NCBI GenBank assembly: GCA_904063045.1
Contig: CAJFCJ010000006.1
Coordinates: forward strand, 4,294,408 to 4,358,407
Direction: 5' to 3'
Source: Dimorphilus gyrociliatus
Taxonomy: Eukaryota; Animalia; Annelida
Length of the DNA stretch: 64,000 bases
Shown here: positions 3,501 through 58,578 of the stretch, piece by piece
Position numbering within the stretch: position 1 is the stretch's first letter
Layout: every line of letters begins with the position of its first letter
Notes under the pieces: generated by a model
Told to the model about the DNA's origin: nothing
Databases searched by the model: none
Seen by the model: only the letters and a program-made list of their open reading frames with translations
Program-made: the position numbers and the translations under genes

Positions 3501-4737
3501 CGGTAACGAATTAAGAAGGACTTGGAACGAAGATGAAGAAGAAGAGCTTCGTATGGCTTTTAACGAGTTTAAAGAGACTGATGACATTGTCGGGTGTATT
3601 CTCGACAGTTTGAAAGTAAAGAGATCAAAAGCGGCAGTAATAAATAAATTACTGAGCTTAGGCCTCATATCTGATAGAAAGGAAGTAAGAAGAAAGAAGA
3701 AAAAGAATAATTTCGTTTTAGAAAAAGAGCAAGATAACGAAGAAGACGAATTAGATGTTGACACTTTGGATGATATAATAACTTCTTATCAAAGAAAATC
3801 TCTGAATCCTGACATTGGTTTAGATTGGGTAATTTCTCTATTGACACGAGCTATTGATGACAGAGGCGATGGAGAAGATCAAGAAGCAACTGCTATCATT
3901 CCTCTAAAAGATGAAGATGAGGAATGCTTAGATGATCCACATTTTACGAGAATCTTAAAGAAAATTGGCTTTAGAAAACCAGATATGGTTCAAGAAAGAT
4001 ATTGGAGAATACCTGCTGACCTTTCTTGCGAATATCTTGAAGAGTGCTGCGATACTGTAAAGGTTAAAAAGGATGACTGTCCTGAAGATATTAACGTTGC
4101 TGACATATTAAAAGGCAGGCAGTTTTTAGATGATAGCTTTTCGGACACAGAGCCGTCCACGTTGGGTCGTGGACTATTTATTGGTGCTAGTGATGACGAG
4201 GGTGATGAAGAGGAGGAGGAGAGATTAAGAATTAGAGAGGAAATTGATTCTTTGTTACTTAATAAGACGCGACCCGCGTCAGAAACACTAGAGGATGTTA
4301 TTAAGGTCTATAAAAGTAGAACAAATGATTATTATCCTGGTTTAGACTGGGTTTCGACCTTCCTGAGAAAGGCTATCGATAGCAGAAAAGATTGCCTAAA
4401 TCCTGAATCTATGGCCGTTGTACCAATTAGAGAAGAAGAAGAAGAATATTTAGAAGATGAGAATTTTTCAAAAATTTTAAAGAAAATAGGTTTAAAACAA
4501 CCGGATTTAATTCAAGAGAGATACTGGAGAATTCCAGCAGAATTATCATTAGAATATCTGGAAGAAATCTCAGATACACTGCAAGCTGAGAAAAGCGCTG
4601 ACGAAGAAAACGAAGATATGGATTTTAGTGAAATGATAAGAAAACGAAGAATAGGTGAAGATAGCGATTCGGATGTTGAAACATTTTCAGTGAAAAGGAA
4701 AAAATTAATATTAGACGATGATGATGACGACGATTAG
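507..4737 (+). CDS. TIMELESS: TIMELESS / timeout (tim-2, replisome fork-protection protein), 6 exons, about 1295 aa
   Basis: Exons 507-573, 665-912, 970-2012, 2106-2820, 2875-3282 and 3331-4737, all GT-AG, sum to 3888 nt in frame. N-terminal ACNALG-x-YHKEPDCLETVKDLIRFL, Myb-like WTEEEE/WNEDEEEE repeats and C-terminal QERYWRIP PARP-binding motifs match TIMELESS. Confidence 0.95.
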
Positions 4738-5792
4738 TTAATTATCTAGTTTTTATTATAACATTAATAAATTAATCAATAAAAGAAGCACTTAAATTTT
4801 CCAACTACTTCTTTTTACTATTCTGCAATCTGCAAATTGTAATTTAATCATTAAATGAACTTGTACTTGAATCATTGGTTAACGTCTTCTGTACTTTTCC
4901 TTTATTTTCTCTATAAATATACAATAATATAGGCTTTTGTTGTAAATCGAGAACTTTTCATGGCTATTTTCGTTTAAAAAAGGCACATATAGAGTATTTT
5001 CAGATAGAAAAGGAACCCGGAGTACTTTTTCTTGTCAAAATACATCTGGTAGTTAAAAAACGAAAGAGAATGTATAAAGTATACATAAAATTGAAAACTA
5101 TATACAATTGGCTAAAGACGAACAATACAAAATAAATCTAAATAACATCTGATAACGAAGATTTTAATACTTTGTATAAGATAAATACATTCTAGGTTGT
5201 TTTTCAACCAAAGGACAATTTGTAATTGGAACAAATAGGAATAGAACCAAACAAGTTGTACTTGCTCTTTCTATATACTGTTTTTATATGTATTGGAAAG
5301 AGAAAGATGACAACAATAATAAATATTACATTAATAATAATTTATTGAGAATCTATGTTTTTTGATTTCTCTATAAATAAACTATTAATCGATACTGGGG
5401 CTATTAGTTTAACGTGACTACTCTGTACAAAAGAAATAAATTGAGAGAGGAAGGGAACCTGGATATCTTATTGCCTTAGTAAATATAAACGAATAAATAA
5501 GTATGCAGTGGCCATCTTGGGTTAAAAAAAATAAAAAACAAGAAGCTATTTAATGCAAAAAAGTATTGTGAATTAAGTCATGTTATTGGCGCTTATTTTA
5601 GCAAACGTGATTTGAATGTTGTTTACTACATATGATTGTACTCATGTAAGTGGAGTAAATAAATCACTGTCTCTTTACTTATTTAAATAATGTTACTCTA
5701 GTTTCATATAAATCTCATTCATATGTTAGGAGAAACAAACCGATTCCAACGTATTTTATTTTAATGCTATTATGTATTCTCTTCAGATTTCG

Positions 5793-20070: not shown

Positions 20071-23000
20071 ATGACAACTTTAGCGTATAAGCTAAAACGA
20101 ACCCTTTTCACTCCTAATCAGGAAACTCTAAAATCCTTATTATATGTCACTAAATCAGGAAAAAGATCGAAAGAATATCAAGGAAGCTATTTATGTCTAA
20201 CGAGTAAGTTTGATAAGGATACACTTCCTTCTATGTAAACATTTGTATTAAATCACAATATTCCCTCAACAGGCTCAAATACTAGACATGTTCAGACAAT
20301 GATTCATTTAGTCAAGAAAAATGTTCATAATGATAGTTACAAGATAAAATATTCCTGGCCACTACAGGAACTAAAAGCAGTTGATTGTCATTCTGATGAA
20401 GATGCAAGCGTAAGCTATTCACTACATTAAAATAGTTCAATGTTTTAAATTGATATTTATGATTTGATTAGGTTTCTCTTGAATTGGATTTATTCTTCGA
20501 AAAACCTTATAAATGGACAGTAGGAAAAATTTCAGAAAAAAATCAATTTCTAAGAAGTTTGATAGCGGTAAATATTATAATAAAGTTAATTTATTACAAT
20601 TGATATGCTCATTGCGTTATTTATCTCTTTCTAAAGTGTTACGGTAACCCAGATGGAATATTTAGAAATTTACCAGGAATGCTACTGCAACGTAAGCTAT
20701 ATTTCAATTCTTATTGAATATATCCAATGTTAAATGATTATTTTATATTAAAATTACAGAAAGTGCCTATGAAGAAACAAAAAATACAGAGGAAGCAGAA
20801 GATAGAAAAATTATTTTGGAAGATACTGATGCTGATTATAAATTACTTTCTGACAAAGAAAAGGATTCTCTAAGTCTTTTATTATCAGGTTGAGAAATTA
20901 GAAATTTTCCATCAAAGACACGTTAATATAAGATATAATGATATTTTCAGATTGTGAAAATTCAATGTCAGATGCAGAAGCTTTCGTTGATAAATTGAAA
21001 GATGATTTATCGGAATTAGAGAGAGTTTGTTTTTCAAATCATTTCAATACAAGATATAATCTTATAATTGTCTACTACTTTTAGGAAAATATGACTTCAA
21101 TAATGAGTTCTGAAGATGTTGTTGCTAATTTGATGTTCAGTTTAGATGCCTCGATACGTCAAGCCAGCGAAGTTGAAGATCTGCTTGATAAATACGATTC
21201 AAAATTGCAAACAGTTAGAGAATTAGTAGATTTAATGCAGGACAAGCAGAGATTGCTGACTATTAGGTTTGTCTAATAAATAATCAACTTAATCGCTTTA
21301 AAATTAATCTATATACAGATCAACAAATCATGCTAAACTATTAGAAGTTTTAGATTCTGTTATAGTAAGAATTTTTATTGTAAAACATTATATTGTTGAT
21401 TAATAATATATTTTCTTAGAATTTACTGGACTTTCCACAAGATCAGATAGATGTCCTTGAACAAGTTAAATTGTCAGAAATTCCAAGCGTTACAAAAGCA
21501 GCTCTACGATTGAGAAGATGTCTAACGGCCGATTTGCCAGAACGTAAGTAGAAATTTTACAATTAATCAAATTGATTAAGTATTAATGAATATAACTATA
21601 AACAGATATAGAAGAAATGGAAGCTGTTGCCAACAGATTAAACAAACTGAAAAGAATTCAATCTACCTTCTGCCAAAATCTTATGAGAGCTTTAAATAAT
21701 ACAATTACATATGAGGTTTGAGTTAAAATATAAGAATATACGCATCTCTAACTAATTTTTTTGTTATATTAATAGCAAAATAGATTAGGTGATAGTTTAA
21801 AAAGCGGTAAATTTGACCTAAAATTACCAGGACATACTGAAATGCATAGAATTCTTTTACAATTTTCTCAATTAATGTCTTTCTTAAAAGACGTTAATAA
21901 GAGTGCATTTGATGAAATGTATAATGTAAGCATTCCATTTTATAGTATATAGTATATTTATTAAAAGAATTACTAAATAGAGCTACAAGAAACACATAAG
22001 AGACGTTTATAATAAAGAATTCGAATGTATATTTGAAGTTGCCAAACTATCAATTGGAATGAAAAATGATAAAAGAGGTGAATATTCTCAAAGATAAATA
22101 TTTTAATAAATCAAATTGAATTTATTATTTGTATAGATAGTTAATTTCTTCTTATAAAACAATTTTTTCTATAATTTACTTGTTGTTTTGTGTGAAATAT
22201 TAAATGATAAACATTTTCAGCAAATCTCAAGTCAAGTAGGGTTCTATTACAATTATTTTTTTTATTCACTTTTTATTTCTTTTATGATTATGCAGCATGA
22301 AATTTATATTTATTATATACATATATGAAATATATATATTTTATATAACACATATTTATATATTATAGCATTTATTTAGCGGCCGAAGTTTTGATTATTG
22401 ATTTTTGTTTTTCTCTATATATTTCTTTTTTTTTTACTCCTCGGAAATATTAATATAGCCAATAGATTTATAAACTAATAGTATATTTGATTAAACACTT
22501 TTTATCTCTTTTGCAACACTATATATTTGTATTATGTAATAGTTTTTCTTTCTATAATTTGTTATTTCTTATTAAAATTGAGTTTTTTTTTTAATTAGGA
22601 TTAAGTCAACATAGTTCCGGTGCAACAGGAACTTTAGAAAGAACTATTCACGAAGAAGCTGCTAAATTCGATCAGGTAAATTATTTATTAAATATATGTG
22701 CTTATTAGTTTAATATTTGATATAATTTTAAGACTTTCGATCAAGTTTTGAATGTTCTACAAGCGAATTGTTTTCGTGAGCAAGAATTTTGCATTGAATT
22801 TTTTGATTTATGCAAAGGAGTAGAGGTGAGCTAAATACTTAAATATTCTTTTACTCTTCTTAAATTTATCTTCTTAGGGTGATGTTTCTAGTGGTAGCAC
22901 TAGATCACCTGCTGAATCTTCTCCTATACATAAACCATCAGCCAAGCTGTAAGTCTTTGTTAAAAATCCTTTTTCTTTATTACTATGAATGGTTTGTCGT

Positions 23001-36933: not shown

Positions 36934-38100
36934 ATGTTTATACCATCTTTTTCCACCAAATTGAAATACGAAGCTGAAATGGCGGCTAAAATACTTAGAG
37001 AATTTACAATGGTTGGTTCCAAAAATCCTGTTGATAAATTAATACCAGGTTGGATTAACAGTCGGTTATTTGCGTTATAAAACTCTAATCCTACATTTAT
37101 TACCATTCTTCTCCTGACAATATCACTACTTAGCTGGAATAATTGCGAATGCAAAAGGTTTAGCTATATTGAGAGTTGTACGAATGGGCTTTCTTTTGAC
37201 GGGGAGGGCAGGCAGTGGAATTATAATTACAAAGCTTAAAAATAATTGTTGGTGACTTACTCTTAATTTCTACTATTAATACGTAGAATAACACGTTAAT
37301 TACTTTCTGTCTAACAGTATGGTCGGCTCCTAGTGCAGTAACTTTAATAGGCGTTGGTGCAGGAATTGAAATAGGTGCAGAGGTGCTACACATCTTCAAG
37401 ATTTACCGTTTTACTCTTTTTTTAAAAGGGGGAAATGCTCCAATTATATATAACAATTATTCATTAGTTGACAGATTTTGTTATTATTCTAAACACCGAA
37501 TCAGCTGTTAGGGCGTTTGCCCAATCGGGAAATTTAACGTTAGGATCAAATTTATCTTTAGCCGTAGGACCTATTGGAAGAAATGTTGAAATTGATATAT
37601 CCCTAAATAGTCTTGCAGCTGTATTTACCTATTCCAAAACAAAGGGAATATTTATCGGTTGTTCTATTGAAGGAAGCATTCTTTTGGAAAGAAGAGATGC
37701 TAACACAGAGTGCGATTAATTTGAAAAAAGCATCTGCCTTTAATATCTCCATTCTTTAAGCTTTCAACTATACTTTTTATTATAAATATCAATCTTTTCA
37801 GATTTTATGGTAGGGCAATTAGTGCTTCAGAGATTCTATTAAATGGCAGAGTTTACGCACCAGCAAAATGCTCTGAATTATACAAAATGATTGAACTACG
37901 AACAGGCGAATACTGTAAAACGCAAACTACAAAATCAAGAAATTTTACCAATTCTACGCAACTGCAAAAGAAGATATCTTTAATACAGGTACTTATTAAT
38001 GATATATTTAATAAGTTATGAAGTTTACCCCATCAATCTTGCTAAAAACATCCCTTATAAACAGAAACTCTTAAATCCAATAGCAATGGTAAATATATAA
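36934..38100 (+). CDS. SYLF/Ysc84-domain protein (SH3YL1-like), no SH3 domain found
   Basis: Spliced translation AAKILREFT...DKLIP...NAKGLAIL...GRAGSG...WSAPSA...GAE-LTDFVIILN...AVGPIGR...AAVFTYSKTKGIF.G.SIEGS matches the SYLF domain. The 3' end is uncertain. Confidence 0.85.
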
Positions 38101-38136
38101 CATACAACATAAGATAATTTGAAGATATGAAAAATA

Positions 38137-38142
<6 letters not shown>

Positions 38143-38169
<27 letters not shown>
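38143..38169. repeat. (TC)n microsatellite, GAGA-like element, followed by TATAAAG at 38189-38195
   Basis: Directly visible repeat about 240 bp upstream of the PIN-domain ORF. Confidence 0.85.
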
Positions 38170-38408
38170 ACCACTCTTTTCTCATCAGTATAAAGAGTTG
38201 ATAGATGATAAAGGAGATCCAAAGGTTATTTCTAATAAAAATGATAATTTAACATAAACCAGCAGTCGATTGCAACTCAAATTAACGAAACATTATGGTT
38301 TATAGTAAATTGGAAAATGATTCAATATTTATACGTATTCCATTACGTAATATTTAGAATTTAAATTACTTTCCTAAAGATTAAGATAATAAATATTTGA
38401 TCAAGATT

Positions 38409-39032
38409 ATGTCAGAATTAAGAGCATTGCATATCGTATCAACAAGTAATCGTCCATATAGGCTTAGTAATTTGGTACCTAAGGCCTTCGCAAAAAAGAA
38501 TGATATATCTGAAAGCTCTTCAATTTCATCTGAAAATGTTCCGCTTCAAGAATTAAAATTAGCCAATTGTGTTATTTACATCGATTTAGATAATTGTGGC
38601 CATTTTTTTAGATTAGTACCTAATGAATTCCCAGCTGGGACTTTTGTTTGGGGTTTTCACGGTGGTTCTTCTAACTGGAGTGGACCAACTCATTGTACGT
38701 CTTTTAACGACATAAAAGAAAAGGGAATGTTTAAGTTACACGAAAAATGTGGTAAAACTAAGGATGCTGCGGATGTTGCACTAACACTTCATGTTGGGAA
38801 AGCTCACGAATTATTAAGGAAAAGAGTTATTTTCCTTGTAATTTCCGGTGACAAGGCGTTTATTGAACTGCTTAATCAATTTCATAAATCTAGACGTGAT
38901 ATTTACCTGCTAAACCCCCATCAAATTTCTGATAAAAATTTCTATCAATTATTAATGGCTGCTATAGAAAGAAAACTAAAACCTGAAGAGCTGAGAAACC
39001 TGGAATTAGATATGCGCACAACATCTAGATAA
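38409..39032 (+). CDS. Stand-alone ZNF451-type PIN-like (PIN_11) domain protein, intronless, 207 aa
   Basis: IYIDLDNCGHFF...GTFVWGFHGGSSNW...LHEKCGKTKDAADVAL...ISGDKAFIEL.NQF...LLNPH matches the C-terminal PIN-like domain of ZNF451 as remembered. ATG at 38409 (the ORF track starts at TTG 38397). Confidence 0.8.
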   Translation: MSELRALHIVSTSNRPYRLSNLVPKAFAKKNDISESSSISSENVPLQELKLANCVIYIDLDNCGHFFRLVPNEFPAGTFVWGFHGGSSNWSGPTHCTSFNDIKEKGMFKLHEKCGKTKDAADVALTLHVGKAHELLRKRVIFLVISGDKAFIELLNQFHKSRRDIYLLNPHQISDKNFYQLLMAAIERKLKPEELRNLELDMRTTSR

Positions 39033-39142
39033 TTTCCTGCAATAATCATTTAGTATTAATTTGCTTAATTGCATTGAAAATAATTCAATTTATTTCATAA
39101 TTATTTAACAACCAGGGAATAATAATAAATAGTACAATTTTT

Positions 39143-42100
39143 CTATATATTTATACCCCATTTTTTACATATATTATACATAGATTCTTTCAATTTTAGA
39201 GAATTTCCAAAGTCTGGAATTTTTTCTAAAGATTGATTGATTTGTTGCGGTATAAATAAATCATTTAATTTAGTTTTATCGCTTAATTCTAATAGCTTTT
39301 CAAAAGAGCTGCAATATTGTGAAATATAAATTTCGTCCGTTAATTTTCGTGATGAATTTAACGGCTCCAAAATAGCTGTGAAAAGTCCTCCTAATACATA
39401 TAATGAAGGAGATTGATCATCAAAAAAACAAGAGTTAAAAATTGCCTGAAAAATAGATATATATTCTAGATCGTCTTCGGTTGCTAATTTCCTACCAATC
39501 CATGATATAAGAGCGTAGTCCTTCAAAAGAACCGTTACGGTTCGCTTCGAATTAGAGCAGATATTGAGAAGAGTTCTTATGACGTGTTTCTATTATAAAA
39601 GAAAATAATCAATGAAACGGTCTTGTAAAATAAAGTAAGATGAATAATAAACTAACCCGACAAGAAGTGTCACATATACTGGGAGTATCGTGAAAAGAAA
39701 GAAGCATCCCCACTCCGTGTCTTTTGTCAAATAAACGGAAATCACTCGTTTCGCGCATCCCTTCCTCTAACAGTTGTAAAGCCCATTTGCGTTCACGATT
39801 CTGTAAGGATCAATATTAAATGTACAAATATGTCTTAAATAGATTAGATTATTAAGCAACTAAATTAGAAAATTACATTTTTTGCACCATGAAAAGTACT
39901 GAAAAACATTGGAATTTCATTTAAATCCATCTTTTCGCTATGTAATATAAAAGCTTGAATTCTTGAATAAATCGGATCGCCTAGAAGACGAAATATTAGT
40001 GATAATTTAAGAGTAATTTTTTCATTAAATAAGACAAACCATGATTAAACATCGTTGTTCCAGCAATTGATAAAAATCTTGTAATTATACAAGGTATTTT
40101 TTCATTCGCCTTAGTTGTAGAATTTTTAATAACATCTAATAAATGCATAATATGCTTTTTTTCTGCAAATCTTTCATTCGTTAAATGCCCATAAAATAGA
40201 GATAAGGCCGAGTAAGCACAATTCCTAGTTGATTCTTTGTGATTACTTAAAGCAGAAGTTAAGTATGAGAGACATCCTTTTAGAATGAAGTCTTTACAAT
40301 TTACAACATTTTCTGTAAAATACAGAATATTCTAGTTGATATCAAGTAAAAGTTAAGTAAAACTTACCAGCGCCTAAGACATTCACAAACAATGGCAACA
40401 AAAACCCTGGATCATACACTTTGTTATTAATGTCTTCATTCCTAATTTTCATCGGAATTTCGTTTACAATATCCTAAAAATTTAAGAAAAGTAATAATAA
40501 TTCTTATTTTTTGAGAAAAGAATTAATTTTACCTGAAGGTTTCTCTGCAATGGAAAGTTTACACAGCTGTATTGTAAAATCTCTTCATCCAGTAATTGCA
40601 AAACTTGGGATGCATATGGTGTCTTCTTAAGCGTTTTTTTATTACTATCCTCCTTTAAAATATCTCCTTTGCGGCCCCATAGTAATGGTCTGAATTTTTT
40701 AAAAATCTTATTCTGTATTCAACATACATTTTCTAATAAATACCTTATTCTTGAAAAATCAACACCACTCATCTCATATTTAGCAATAATATACAGTATT
40801 CTTCTATCTAAAAAATGAGGATAACATATTTAAACGCTTCGCAAAGAATTAGAAAGACAAAAATACCTGTTAATAATAATGTCGCTGTATAAGAACGCAA
40901 AAAAATGTTAACATGAGACTGTTCATAACAATCAGATGATAAGTTGTTTGACAGAATAAACAACAAATGAATTAAATCGTTGAAAGCTGTTGAATTAAGA
41001 AAAAAGTTAATTAGAACAAAGAAACGTTGGCAACAGTTTCTAAAAACTTACTCTTTCCGGTATTGTTGTCCAGCATTTCCAAGAATTCTTGTGAATTTAG
41101 AATATATTTGTACAAATTTGCAAAAGGTAATTCTAAATCTTTCTTAAGCTCTGGCTCCATTTCATCCTTTAAACATTTTGTTAGAAATTGCACTATTTTT
41201 GGAGGATAAAATCCGGAGCTGTATGAATATATCAACAATTAGATAAATGAAAATTTTAATAAAAAGAAACAAACCAAATAAAAGAAGAAATGTCCGACAT
41301 ATGAGAACGAATAATTTCAAGAGAGCATCCTTTTTTATCTATAATTTCTATTAGAACAGTCAAAGTTTTGTCGATTGAAAGATTAACATCTCTTTCTTGG
41401 GACATCGAAATTAAATGCATCAAAATTTCACACAAATATTTAACATCCTCATTGGCAAACTCCAATAGAACTTCAATTGCTTCATCTGGTTCTCTACTCT
41501 TATTTAGCCATTTTATTAATTTTCCATAAAGTTTCTCCTTTTCGCCTGAAAACAAACATTTATATAAAATATTTCAAAATCAGACAAAGTATAAGCATAC
41601 CTGAATAGCGCGCAATACTAGCCAAGTTCTTCATATCTTCGTAGTCAAATTTTCCAGACTCAGTTTTAATTAATTGTTTAAATTCTTTGTTATGAAATTC
41701 AACAACGGTTTCTTTCACTTTATCATCAATTGATTCTTCTTGACAGTAACTACTGCACAAAGTAAAAACAAACTTTTTTGACTTCTTAGCTTCTAGAAAG
41801 TCAGAATAAATATTTTCAAAGCATTCAATAAACTCCGTTGACAATTCACATAGACGTTTCAGTATATTAATGCATATAACTTCCAGTTTTTTAACCTTTA
41901 AATTGAGAATATCTTTAAGAAATTTACCATCTTTATCTATAATATTTTGGAATAAGTGTGGAGAAAGATTCATAATGTTGAACAGAGTTTCTCCTTTTTC
42001 AATTAAATTATTTTGTTCCTTGAATACTTCTTTAATAATTCTCGCTAAGCTCTCTCCACATATAGATATAGTAATCTCATCATTCTGAGATCTGGCTATA

Positions 42101-52986: not shown

Positions 52987-54641
52987 ATGACATCTTCTAT
53001 ACTTAGACTAATACCACTCTCTTGTAAAAGAATGTTTGCCAATAAATCATATTCCAAAGGGAAAGCTAAAATCGGCATTATACAACTCAGATGTACTGCA
53101 GATAAAAATGCTAATTATGATAGTGCATCATATTTAATAAAACAGGCTGCTAGTCAGGGTGCAAAAGTTGTTTTTCTCCCGGAGTGCTGCGACTACGTAT
53201 CAGAATCAAAAGAGCAAGCTCTGGAATTGGCAGAAACCTTAGATGGACCTTTAATAACCAAGTATAAGAGGTAAGTAATTGGTTTAATTATTCTCCTATT
53301 TATAAATTATCAATGCACAGTTTAGCAAAAGAGCTGAGTGTTTGGATGTCCTTAGGTGGGATACACGAGAAAAGACTAGATGACCCTAAACGAACTTCAA
53401 ATTGCCATGTCATAATTAACAGTGATGGCGATATTGTGTCGACTTATCATAAAGTTCATCTTTTTGATCTGGACATACCGGGGAAAATCAAACTAAAAGA
53501 AACCAATTTCACGGTACCGGGTGAAAAATTGGTCCTCCCAGTACCTTCTCCAGCTGGATCAATTGGGATGGGAATCGTATCCTTTTTTCGTACAGCCTGT
53601 GTCTATCATCAGTGAAGAGAAATGAACTAAATATTTTCCTTAACTGATAATTATTGCTACGATGTAAGATTTCCAGGTATATCTGAATGGTTACGACTAC
53701 AAGGAGCCCATATACTAACATATCCTTCAACTTTTACGATTGTTACTGGAAGGGCTCATTGGCATACTTTAATGAAATCCAGAGCTATTGAGACTCAGTC
53801 GTATGTTATATCTGCCGCTCAAGAAGGCCAGCATAATGCGAAAAGAAGCTCGTATGGACACTCGATTGTTGTTGATCCATGGGGCTCTGTCTTAGTAGAT
53901 TTAGAAACAAAAACACCTTCATTTGGTGTTGTTGATATTGATTTAGACTTCCTCAATACCAAACGAATCGAAATGCCTGTTGATGTTCATAGACGAGATG
54001 ACTTATATGGTTCTTACGGTATTATCTCCGAATCAGAAAAAACGTCAGAGCTAGAACAATGGATAGGTCTAGAATCAGGATATTTTAATTTTGGACCTGA
54101 TATCAAGATTGAAGAAAGATGTTTATTTTTCCAAACAAAACGGTAAATTCTTAATAGTCTATCAAAAAAGATTATAAAAATATAATGGTGGTTTCAGATG
54201 TGTTGCATTTGTCAATCTTAAACCAGTTAGGCCTGGTCATGTGTTGATTAGTCCTAAAAGAATAGCAGCTAAATTTACAGATCTTTCAGCTGAGGAGATA
54301 TCAGACTTATGGTCCACAGCCCAAAAGGTTCAAAAGATTATGGAAACCGAATATGCAACCGAGAGTTCGACACTAGCAATACAAGATGGACCGGAAGCTG
54401 GACAATCTATCCCTCATGTTCACATCCACGTTATTCCTCGTAAATCCGGTGACTTTCCTAGAACTGACGACGTCTATACAGAGGTTTGATAATTAAAAAA
54501 ATAAAGAAAAAAACTCTTTTTCACTTTCTATTTAATGTCTAGCTTGAAAAGCATGATAAAGATGAAAACAGACCAGCAAGGACGATGGAAGAAATGGAAG
54601 CAGAAGCTCAAAAATTAAGAAAATATTTCTATAAAAATTGA
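52987..54641 (+). CDS. NitFhit: NitFhit fusion protein (Nit1 nitrilase-family amidase plus Fhit HIT hydrolase), 5 exons, 470 aa
   Basis: Exons 52987-53270, 53321-53576, 53655-54142, 54198-54483 and 54543-54641 sum to 1413 nt. Triad motifs FLPEC, YHKVHLFD and GI|CYDVRF, plus HIT motif HVHIHVIP. Confidence 0.95.
53577..53654 (+). other. U12-type (minor spliceosome) intron with apparent GT-AT termini in NitFhit
   Basis: 5' site GTATCCTTTT at 53577, branch site TTTTCCTTAAC at 53634-53644, 10-nt spacer ending AT. Removal restores GMGI-CYD in frame. Confidence 0.82.
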
Positions 54642-55185
54642 AAAAGTTTTAACTTATTAAAATTGAATAAAAGAAAACAAGAACTATTGAAAAAATGTTT
54701 CAACTTGAGCAATTAGTTTATTTTTAGTACTTAACAAAATACCCTATATTTAAAAAACTAATAATACAATTCGCTCATAATTAATAATACGTAGAACAAA
54801 TAAATAAAACGTGTAATAATATATTTCATTTATGTTAGGATATATCATTAATAATGTGCTTTTTTTTCTTTTTTTTAAGAAAAATGACAAACAGTAATAG
54901 ATAAATAGTAAATAGTTAATAAACGGTAATATCTTTAGAAAATATATTTTAATCTTTTTGAAAATAAAACATTGATATTCTTGTAAAAAGTAAAAATTTA
55001 TACTTGAGTACAGAGGGAGGAAAGGAGGAAATAGGATGAGGGGGGGGGGAGGAGGGGAGGGGATTTTAAAGAAGAAAAAAATATGACCACTGCGAATTTT
55101 CTACAAAGAGTGCTCGAGTCAAAACATTAACTAACTTACTGACCACAACAACGAAAAACAGTAGTATTATTTAAGAATACTCCAG

Positions 55186-58100
55186 TTAATATGGACGCGC
55201 GCTTTGATGAGTTGATATAGGCTGAGATGTAAATACAGGGGGTGAACCATCAAGCCACTGTAAAATAAATTTTTCGTTATATTTAATTAATATAATTAAA
55301 TTAAATATAACAAAATTTTACTTCGATGAGTTTATGTTCAGGTTGCCCGCCAGCGTTCAAGTAATCGTTTAATAAAAGTTCACTGAATTGTTTGTACAAG
55401 CTACTATATTCGATCGAACTTTGTTGATTTCCACATTTTTCATAAATTCCTATAGAATGGAAGGAATTAATTTGGATTTCTCTTGTTTAAAGATAACTTC
55501 CTCGTTTTACCTTTAAGTAGAAAAGATGCCCATAGCTGGACATGATTATCAGGTATTTTCGCTGCTAACTGCATTGCTGGATTAATCATGTTTAATGCCT
55601 CCTATTATAATTATGAAATAAAAATTCATAAGCTATGCTTGTAGAGTGATTGATAATAAACAAACCGTAGAGTTACTTTGGTCACAAAATATATGACCAA
55701 GCAGAACTAATCCACATGCAGTTAATCGGTTTAATTCCTCGCCATTAGCAATCTTGATTGATTCCCTTAGAACTCGTCTAAAAGAAACATATTTTTAAAT
55801 AGGAGTCAATGCTTGTTTAGAAGTTGATGTTTTTCAGAAAAAACTATCGATCATACTTAGCATCGTGGTATCTTCTTTCAAAAAATGCCTGTAAACCTTT
55901 GACGTATAACGTTGAGGCTTTGACACTTTGATTACTGGACATAATAAAAAAGAATTACTTTGATTTTTAGGATACTTATTAAGAGCTATTGATACAAACT
56001 CTTGATTGCAAGCAACGTGATTGTCACATTTCTCTAGTAAGCTTACAACTTCTGCTTGACGATTCATTTTTAAATAGCATATAGCTAGATTTAGTCTGAT
56101 AAACGTTGCTAATTCTTTATCAGCACTCTATAGAAAGAATACATTTGCTAATTAAATTAATAAATAGATAGATAATTAAGGTTAATTACTTTAATAGCCA
56201 GACTAAACTGAGCCTCTGCAGCATCCATACAATTCATTGACATCGCATATAATCCCTGTAGAGAATAGATCAATTAATATAAATTTATAAAATATTCAAA
56301 TGTTAAAACAAACGATTAAAGTATGAAGTTGAGAACTATGAGTGCGAAACAATCTTGGAGCTGATTGAGAAACATGATTACTGGCGTGCATGATCTATAA
56401 AATGAAAATATAGTAAACGTTAATACATTACAAATTCATCTAAGATATATATAATATATACTTACTCCTTTAATTGCTTCATATTGATTACCAGATATAA
56501 TCTTACATTGTATGACTTGTTCAAATAGGAACAATTCCATTGATTTCAGTAAAGGACTATCCACTGCTCCAGCAGCTGGAATTTATTTGATAAAAAGTAA
56601 TCGGATTATAGAGATAAATTACGAACAATTTTGTCTTTTACTACCTTTCAAGTTGTTTACGTGACTAAGGGCTTTTTCGGTATACTTCGAAGCCTTTTCT
56701 ACACAACCGGCTTGCAGTGAATGAATAATTGTTACCAAATATACAACAACGCATATTTGATCCTTTGGCATCCAATGAAACTTGTCAATTGGATTATAAT
56801 TCATTGTATCTTCTTCAGGCATATTAGTTAAAGTTTGTATAGTTTGCTGCAGTTGCTTTAAAGACGGTTTGCATGATTTTACCTAAAAAAGGAAATTATT
56901 ACTGATTACCTAAAAAATGCTTGTTAATTATATATTTTAAAGAAATTTCAGTGTAATAAAATTGATTAATAATTTAACACAAAAGTCCTATAAATAATTT
57001 ACAAACCTTTCCAGTAATTAAATATTGATAGACATCCAAAAAGAGGTAAAAAGTACGTAGACTCTCTCGATGATATTGGGAAGTCATTTGCTCAATACAT
57101 CTAGCAGACGCAGCCATAGCAGTTGGAATTTGATCCAGTTTCTTCCCCATAAGAAGTACCTTAATGTTATATAGACAATTTTAAATGTTAGACTTTATCA
57201 AGTGTAAATTTATTAAAAGGAAGCTAACCATAGCTTTACTTAACAAAAACAAGCCTTGAGTATAAAACGATCTATGAGATGCAGCGAAATCACTTCCGAT
57301 TGACAGCATTTGAACAGCAACATCATACTGATAATCAGCTATAAAGTTTTCCTGGAATTGTCAATTTTTTAATATCATTTGTAATAAAGCATTCTTCAAA
57401 ACTTACCGACACCTGCAGCAAAAGTAGACAATGCCAATACGGAAATTGACCAGATCTATCAATAGCTGTCCTTAAAATTGCCTTAGAATCTTCAGTATTT
57501 CCCTTTATTAATAAACAATATATTAAATATATTACGCAGATGTTATGCAAATATCCAAAACTATATCATACCTGAGAAATGTACAGTTTGGCAAGTGTCG
57601 AAGCAGTTTCAAATATTACACTATCATCTAAAACCTAAATTTATGTTAAGGAAATCATTTACTTTCAAGTATGTAGTAAATCAATTCTACTATCCAATCT
57701 TTTGTTTCGATCCAATAAAACTCAAACTTACTGAATGATTGTTAGAAAAAGCTATATAAATATAGATATGAGATTAATTTGGAAAAAGCTGAAGCTTTTA
57801 ATGTTATTGTAAAACGTCCATAAAAGAGGTTAATATGAATATTATAGGCTTTTGAGATGAAAATCTAATAGGTTTATTGCAATTTTGTCGACTTAATTAC
57901 AGCTAAGGATATAAATTCTCCAGCTTCCCTTAGTAACTTTCATTTTATGTCATTGATTAATGAAAATTTAAGGTATACTCAATTATCTATAAATGGATTT
58001 AGGGGGATAAAAGAATTAGCCAGCGTATGTAGCCGAGCGTTTTTAGGCAACCTTGAAAGGTATTTTGACGTTTACGAATACGTATAACTTCATATTGATA

Positions 58101-58578
58101 GTAGTGGCGTGCTATTAAAAATTTCGTTATCGTTTAAGAGATGGATATTAAAAGCCTATTGTACTAATATTTAAAAAAATAATATACCATCATCAACTAC
58201 ATATCTTACTGTACTAAAAAGGGAAAAATATTGCAAAAATGTGTTTTATAAAGGATACACTTTGGCTTAGCTGCCACTGAAAAAGCGTAAAAATAACATT
58301 TACTTAACAAACAGTGATAATTAAGTATAACTTACAGCAGTTTCTAGATGCCTTTGCGCCAAGTCGATATTATTTGTTTGCTTAAATAAAATTGATCCCA
58401 ATTGATAATTCGTCCGTGCTTCCAATCTTGGATGTAACTTGAAGGATAAAATACTCCTTAGGCACTGAATACATGCTTTATAATTTGGAGGATTAGTAGT
58501 CCTAAATTTTTCTGCTAATCCTAATAAAGATGCGTAAATCGGAGACAATTCTTGAGTGATGACGGCTGGAGTGGCCAT
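55186..58578 (-). CDS. MAU2: MAU2/Scc4 cohesin loader subunit, multi-exon
   Basis: [15 protein letters not shown]...CIQCL...[35 protein letters not shown] and a WLDGSPP C-terminal exon ending TAA at 55188-55186. Confidence 0.95.
57635..58258 (-). other. U12-type GT-AG intron (624 nt) in MAU2
   Basis: Minus-strand 5' site GTATCCTTTAT at 58258, branch TTTCCTTAAC at 57654-57645, 10-nt spacer ATAAATTTAG. Joins WQLSQS to VLDDSVIFE in frame. Confidence 0.9.
58259..58276 (-). other. 18-nt microexon (WQLSQS) of MAU2
   Basis: ttttcag|TGGCAGCTAAGCCAAAGT|gtatccttt supplies the residues expected from the homologue (AW-x-x-SQ). Confidence 0.85.

Follow-up and report, generated by a model that had tools for sequence, protein, structure and literature searches.

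The gap between exons 2 and 3 of the NitFhit gene of Dimorphilus gyrociliatus is very probably a U12-type intron of the rare GT-AT subtype. A first-pass annotation of the stretch of genomic DNA studied here (64 kb, hereafter the window) had proposed such an intron directly in front of the codon for the catalytic cysteine, and this structural reading, namely the U12-type class, the GT-AT ends and the exact predicted junction, is borne out by spliced contigs and by five orthologous U12-type introns. The motifs of the intron and its orthology suggest that its removal depends on the minor spliceosome; the strongest argument for this class is the orthology, since U12 signals are found at one position across species.

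Structure of the NitFhit gene

The NitFhit gene consists of five exons on the + strand and spans positions 52987-54641 from ATG to stop (Table 1). It encodes a fusion of a CN_hydrolase (Nit) and a HIT (Fhit) domain on one transcript, as seen from Pfam searches with the individual exons and from single contigs that cover all five exons. Downstream of the stop codon, an AATAAA hexamer is found at 54666, and the contig of sequencing run X3 ends near 54677. Exon 2 ends with GGG ATG GGA ATC and exon 3 starts with TGC TAC GAT at 53655, which yields the anticipated direct junction GMGI/CYD (the slash marks the joint). Joining of the two exons rebuilds the nucleophile motif G-x-x-I-C-Y-D-x-R-F as GMGI/CYDVRFP, and the same motif is present in NitFhit and Nit1 homologs. 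The cysteine at the start of exon 3 had been taken for the nucleophile of the nitrilase superfamily, in agreement with the CYD[VL]RFP motif that is common to the homologs.

Table 1. Features of the NitFhit gene and of the MAU2 intron used for comparison (positions within the window)
Feature	Position	Strand	Basis
NitFhit exon 1 (coding from ATG), N-terminal part of CN_hydrolase	52987..53270	+	Pfam CN_hydrolase profile 1-66; spliced contigs
NitFhit intron 1, 50 nt, GT-AG	53271..53320	+	joint in X2, X3, X4
NitFhit exon 2, 3′ end encodes ...GMGI	53321..53576	+	Pfam CN_hydrolase profile 70-148
NitFhit intron 2, very probably U12-type, 78 nt, GT-AT, phase 0	53577..53654	+	joint 53576/53655 in 3 runs from 2 studies; sequence
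U12 5′ splice site GTATCCTTT	53577..53585	+	sequence
U12 branch-site box TTCCTTAAC, 10 nt upstream of the intron 3′ end	53636..53644	+	sequence
Non-canonical 3′ terminal dinucleotide AT	53653..53654	+	sequence; same AT in syntenic relative
NitFhit exon 3, first codon TGC (53655-53657) encodes the nucleophile Cys	53655..54142	+	Pfam CN_hydrolase profile 149-250
NitFhit intron 3, 55 nt, GT-AG	54143..54197	+	joint in X2, X3, X4 and in coral metatranscriptome X6
NitFhit exon 4, HIT/Fhit domain including HVHIH motif	54198..54483	+	Pfam HIT, 5e-25
NitFhit intron 4, 59 nt, GT-AG	54484..54542	+	spliced contigs
NitFhit exon 5 up to the stop codon (TGA, 54639-54641)	54543..54641	+	sequence; spliced contigs
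MAU2 U12-type GT-AG intron, 624 nt, GTATCCTTTA ... TTCCTTAAC + 10 nt ... AG	57635..58258	-	sequence; conserved in relative L087

Transcript evidence for the junction

The genomic run X1, a possible source of the assembly, contains 1.00 of the 31-mers sampled over the stretch; four other runs hold 0.75-0.79 of the sampled words (0.76-0.79 for X2, X3 and X4), which corresponds approximately to the exonic share. Runs X2-X4 were treated as cDNA because they are devoid of intron words and one of their contigs ends just past the AATAAA hexamer. Each of them holds one mismatch-free contig, which skips 50 nt with GT..AG, 78 nt with GT..AT, 55 nt with GT..AG and 59 nt with GT..AG ends. Position 53576 is joined to 53655 in X2 and X4, which belong to organism A and study P1, and in X3, which derives from organism B and study P2, and the predicted junction GGAATC/TGCTACGAT is therefore present in the spliced contigs of all three runs. 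At this joint, the cut cannot slide elsewhere ('both = 0'), that is, the 78 nt with the ends GT..AT are the segment that is skipped. The RNA-side evidence consists of assembled contigs, which provide no view of minor isoforms, of the level of retention or of the strand.

The joined form could also be explained by a processed copy at the DNA level, i.e. a retrogene, and the kind of the libraries X2-X4, guessed only as 'DNA?' or '?', would leave room for this. However, the intron words, which the genomic run contains in full, are missing from X2-X4 for all four introns. Furthermore, the total contig sizes of X2-X4 are 38-60 Mb with matching records of 1.5-3.6 kb, one contig stops around 10 nt past AATAAA, and the coral metatranscriptome X6, which is recorded as RNA, contains one of the same joints, that of exons 3 and 4. 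We therefore regard a retrogene as barely credible and the joined form as a product of splicing. The X2 contig (3596 nt) runs approximately 2 kb beyond the 3′ end of NitFhit, and the contigs of X3 and X4 terminate close to the AATAAA hexamer (54666); the extension of X2 past position 54700 may reflect transcriptional read-through or a fusion, during assembly, to a neighboring or antisense transcript.

The position of the junction can also be derived from homologs without an intron. In the Pfam CN_hydrolase profile, exon 2 ends at position 148 and exon 3 begins at position 149 with no gap in between, and the joined exons therefore neither lack nor gain a residue here. When metagenomes were scanned with exon 3, 80 homologous loci were obtained, all of which are of bacterial type and intronless; none of these 80 contains an intron at the junction, and wherever the alignments extend to both exon ends, the segments that match exons 2 and 3 are directly adjacent (gap of 0 nt). 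Colinearity with intronless homologs thus fixes the junction independently of the transcripts.

U12-type features of the 78-nt intron

The first-pass annotation had placed the intron at 53577-53654, with a length of 78 nt and the 5′ start GTATCCTTTT, and these coordinates proved to be correct. Its 5′ site GTATCCTTT matches the U12 consensus /RTATCCTTT exactly. The proposed branch site TTTTCCTTAAC does occur at 53634-53644; the box itself, TTCCTTAAC, is an exact match to TTCCTTRAC and is separated from the junction by 10 nt (TGATAATTAT), the final bases of which are AT, as had been claimed. This spacing falls within the typical U12 range of about 8-20 nt. A polypyrimidine tract is absent at the 3′ site, where the box is followed by TGATAATTAT and preceded by AAATATTT. 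Across the window, RTATCCTTT occurs 6 times versus 2.5 expected occurrences and TTCCTTAAC 5 times versus 1.1 expected, and a relaxed scan for U12 motifs returned mostly noise; at the NitFhit locus, the 5′ motif and the branch box coincide exactly with the edges of the coding gap. One further motif pair is located on the - strand at 20150-20222 near the TOP3B/RPP21 region, where GTATCCTTAT is followed by TTCCTTGAT 38 nt later; the next AG lies 27 nt past the box and is too distant for a typical U12 3′ site, and this pair may have arisen by chance or may belong to an unusual intron. An Rfam search of the 64-kb window detected no RNA family, and hence no minor-spliceosome snRNA gene in it.

The termini of the NitFhit intron are GT-AT and thus neither of the canonical pairs AT-AC and GT-AG. 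This places the intron in a documented non-canonical subclass and not outside the U12 family: the features by which GT-AT introns were assigned to the U12 type by Sheth 2006, a U12 5′ site together with a branch box, GT..AT ends and a transcript-backed junction, are all found here. [quoted passage not shown] These share the terminal dinucleotides with the NitFhit intron, but they possess U2-type 5′ sites and pyrimidine tracts, and the NitFhit intron has neither. Its 5′ site matches the U12 consensus perfectly but is poor as a U2 site, with C at +5 and +6, the perfect U12 branch box is located 10 nt before the 3′ end with no pyrimidine tract in between (TGATAATTAT), and the orthologs include an AT-AC U12 intron. 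A U2-type intron with non-canonical ends is consequently highly improbable, and the assignment to the U12 type is preferred.

A second U12-type intron of the window, located in MAU2, provides a comparison. MAU2 is listed among the minor-intron genes of both human and mouse (MIDB supplement, PMC6717393), and NIT1 is not contained in the MIDB minor-intron lists (PMC6717393 supplement). The MAU2 intron resembles the NitFhit intron in its 5′ site GTATCCTTT, its box TTCCTTAAC and the distance of 10 nt from the box to the intron end, and the earlier statement that both introns have the same branch-to-3′ spacing holds. In contrast to the NitFhit intron, it ends with AG, is 624 nt long and belongs to another gene on the other strand.

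A syntenic relative with the same GT-AT ends

A word search with exon 3 retrieved mostly fungal proteins and one close relative, P0001, which led to the Logan contig L081/L087 of run SRR23372228. This contig is syntenic with the window, and NitFhit precedes MAU2 on it, with MAU2 encoded on the other strand; the two genes are arranged tail to tail in the relative as in the window species, and in both the downstream exon of MAU2 starts with GTTTTAGATGAT. The NitFhit exons of the relative and of the window encode proteins with 56, 80, 70 and 60% identity. The predicted intron of the relative is 72 nt long, reads GTATCTTTTT ... TTCCTTATC followed by 10 nt and ends with TATAT/TGT TAT GAT, i.e. it is also a GT-AT intron, with the branch box TCCTTATC, a spacing of 10 nt and AT at its 3′ end. 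Its 5′ site deviates by a T at +6 (GTATCT), and no alternative AG or AC that would restore the frame is present in this intron. The body of the intron has diverged between the window species and the relative; conservation is confined to its 5′ site, its branch box and its final bases. In the MAU2 U12-type intron of the relative (L087 13858-14469, - strand), the AG is likewise retained 10 nt past the box.

These data bear on the possibility of an assembly or polishing error, according to which position 53654 is in reality a G and the intron an ordinary U12-type GT-AG intron. The spliced contigs are silent on this base as it is removed, and the T is carried by the window and by its probable source run X1. 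However, the independently built contigs of X1 hold 1.00 of the 31-mers sampled over the stretch, and the diverged relative has a T at the homologous last base, again with a spacing of 10 nt, in two separate runs: its NitFhit intron sequence in SRR23372228 is identical to that in SRR23372231 (L082). Because two deeply diverged species share the terminal T, an assembly error at 53654 is very unlikely, and the GT-AT state appears to have been maintained for a long time.

Orthologous introns in other protostomes

For a comparison that covers protostomes, NitFhit proteins were collected by a word search and traced to their genomic loci. An intron at the same phase-0 site in front of the Cys codon and of U12 type is present in five other protostomes. 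These are the annelid Capitella teleta (5′ GTATCCAGG, box TCCTTAGC followed by 10 nt, 3′ AG), the nemertean Tubulanus polymorphus (5′ GTATCCTTTA, box TCCTTGAC plus 15 nt, 3′ AG), the bryozoan Bugula neritina (5′ GTATCCTTG, box TTCTTTAAC plus 9 nt, 3′ AG), the bivalve Solemya velum with two copies (5′ GTATCCTTTT, box TCCTTATC plus 7 nt, 3′ AG) and the tick Ixodes scapularis (5′ ATATCCTTTC, box TCCTTGAC plus 13 nt, 3′ AC), whose intron is a classical AT-AC U12 intron. The five orthologous introns share with that of D. gyrociliatus the position between an Ile or Thr codon and the Cys codon, the phase, a 5′ site of U12 type and the placement of the box 7-15 nt ahead of the intron end, but differ from it in having canonical termini and in their lengths of 82 to 1200 nt. 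In Solemya velum (L088), the exon pair that flanks the U12 intron occurs twice, at 3851-5086 and 37978-39201, approximately 34 kb apart and within one annotated NitFhit gene model of 67 kb; the introns of both copies are nearly identical, with 1200 and 1188 nt, and this doubling could be a tandem gene duplication that was merged by the annotation, or an assembly duplication.

No intron is present at the site of the Cys codon in nft-1 of Caenorhabditis elegans (L089 3194-3229), and a mite-like NitFhit open reading frame, P0041, reads straight through the site without an intron. C. elegans is not known to possess a minor spliceosome. The absence from C. elegans and from P0041 is consistent with loss of the intron by deletion in these cases. 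As U12 introns are shared at one codon boundary, the intron dates back to the protostome ancestor or earlier, and it is of U12 type wherever it survives. Its location beside the Cys codon is likewise ancestral and not peculiar to this copy of the gene.

Since the NitFhit intron has canonical GT-AG and AT-AC states in other phyla, the direction of the change can be derived: the last base went from G to T on the branch that led to the window species and its deeply diverged syntenic relative, and the most economical history is one G-to-T substitution at this base in the ancestor shared by the two. According to Larue and Roy (PMC10639083), D. gyrociliatus has lost around 80% of its minor introns, for the most part through deletion. 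The median size of introns in this species is 66 bp (PMC7854359), in keeping with the sequence studied here, which is compact and AT-rich and has introns of 50-80 nt, and the transcripts filed under the two organism labels are identical.

Retention and alternative 3′ splice sites

The annotation had also considered what follows if the intron is not removed or is cut elsewhere, and its predictions from the reading frame are correct. The retained intron reads VSFFRTACVYHQ up to an in-frame stop, the TGA at 53613-53615. Both the Nit and the Fhit half require removal of the intron, because retention ends translation before the Cys codon and the HIT domain. Truncation of this kind applies to nearly any retained coding intron and is not peculiar to NitFhit. 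The next AG, at 53667-53668, would yield a frame-shifting intron of 92 nt and remove the Cys codon. In addition, an AC that the annotation had left unmentioned is located at 53659-53660, 16 nt past the branch box, which would give an in-frame GT-AC intron of 84 nt with the loss of Cys-Tyr alone; according to the reading frame, its usage would produce a catalytically dead Nit domain. Usage of neither this AC nor the AG at 53667-53668 is seen in the spliced contigs, from which rare isoforms are dropped.

It had further been suggested that the weak AT end turns the intron into a regulated retention switch, which is rate-limiting for the output of NitFhit. Slow splicing and regulated retention have been described for mammalian minor introns, and the stop at 53613-53615 in the retained form precedes both the Cys codon and the HIT domain. 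GT-AT introns have moreover been described as competent, but less efficiently spliced than GT-AG introns (Sheth 2006, PMC1557818). However, an intron-retaining contig is absent from the three transcript runs X2-X4, although assembled contigs lose rare forms and cannot measure the level of retention. In addition, the same position is occupied by introns with canonical ends in other phyla, which indicates that the location beside the Cys codon is inherited and not designed. A retention switch is thus unlikely, and we read the intron as a minor intron of the ordinary kind, which is removed constitutively, has a non-canonical terminus and shows no sign of being a dedicated switch.

Proposed mechanism and implications

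Based on the established rules for U12 introns, U11 and U6atac would recognize the consensus 5′ site GTATCCTTT, U12 would pair with TTCCTTAAC, and the 3′ cleavage site would be set mainly by the short fixed distance of 10 nt past the branch box. With the 3′ site being set by the distance from the box, a terminal T could therefore be tolerated instead of a G. Splicing would then rebuild ...GMGI/CYDVRFP..., which is the sole form in the assembled transcripts.

GT-AT introns of the U12 type are known from mammals, with four examples in human and three in mouse, and the GT-AT state of those in DEADC1 and SLC24A6 is conserved (Sheth 2006, PMC1557818). Mutational work cited in PMC1557818 revealed that GT-AG and AT-AC introns are spliced best, but that AT-AN and GT-AT combinations are also productive, with GT-AT introns being spliced through the U12 pathway, and single-base switching between U12 subtypes was found to be frequent (Sheth 2006, PMC1557818). 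A pan-eukaryotic survey lists GT-AT among the non-canonical termini of animal minor introns. The mammalian examples are similar to the NitFhit intron with respect to the U12 5′ site and branch box, the GT/AT ends and the conservation between species, but reside in other genes and in another phylum than the annelid NitFhit. A literature search returned no paper that links NIT1 or NitFhit with minor or U12 introns. Taken together, the NitFhit intron is a new example of a known rare class, the GT-AT U12 introns, and involves no new mechanism.

A more far-reaching reading would be that GT-AT is a recurrent, fixed state in the lineage of miniature annelids, which would reflect a lineage-wide relaxed or shifted reading of the last intron base, or that the terminus tunes NitFhit via retention; we consider this rather unlikely.

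The NitFhit intron provides a transcript-backed case of the rare GT-AT minor introns outside vertebrates and is one survivor of the loss of around 80% of the minor introns of D. gyrociliatus. It is plausible that annotation pipelines that are limited to GT-AG, GC-AG and AT-AC introns could break NitFhit or shift its frame at the catalytic Cys. With three terminal states, AT-AC, GT-AG and GT-AT, at one orthologous position across protostomes, the intron illustrates how U12 subtypes have switched in nature, and it is a useful example of a 3′ splice site that would be chosen by its distance from the branch box and not by the terminal dinucleotide.
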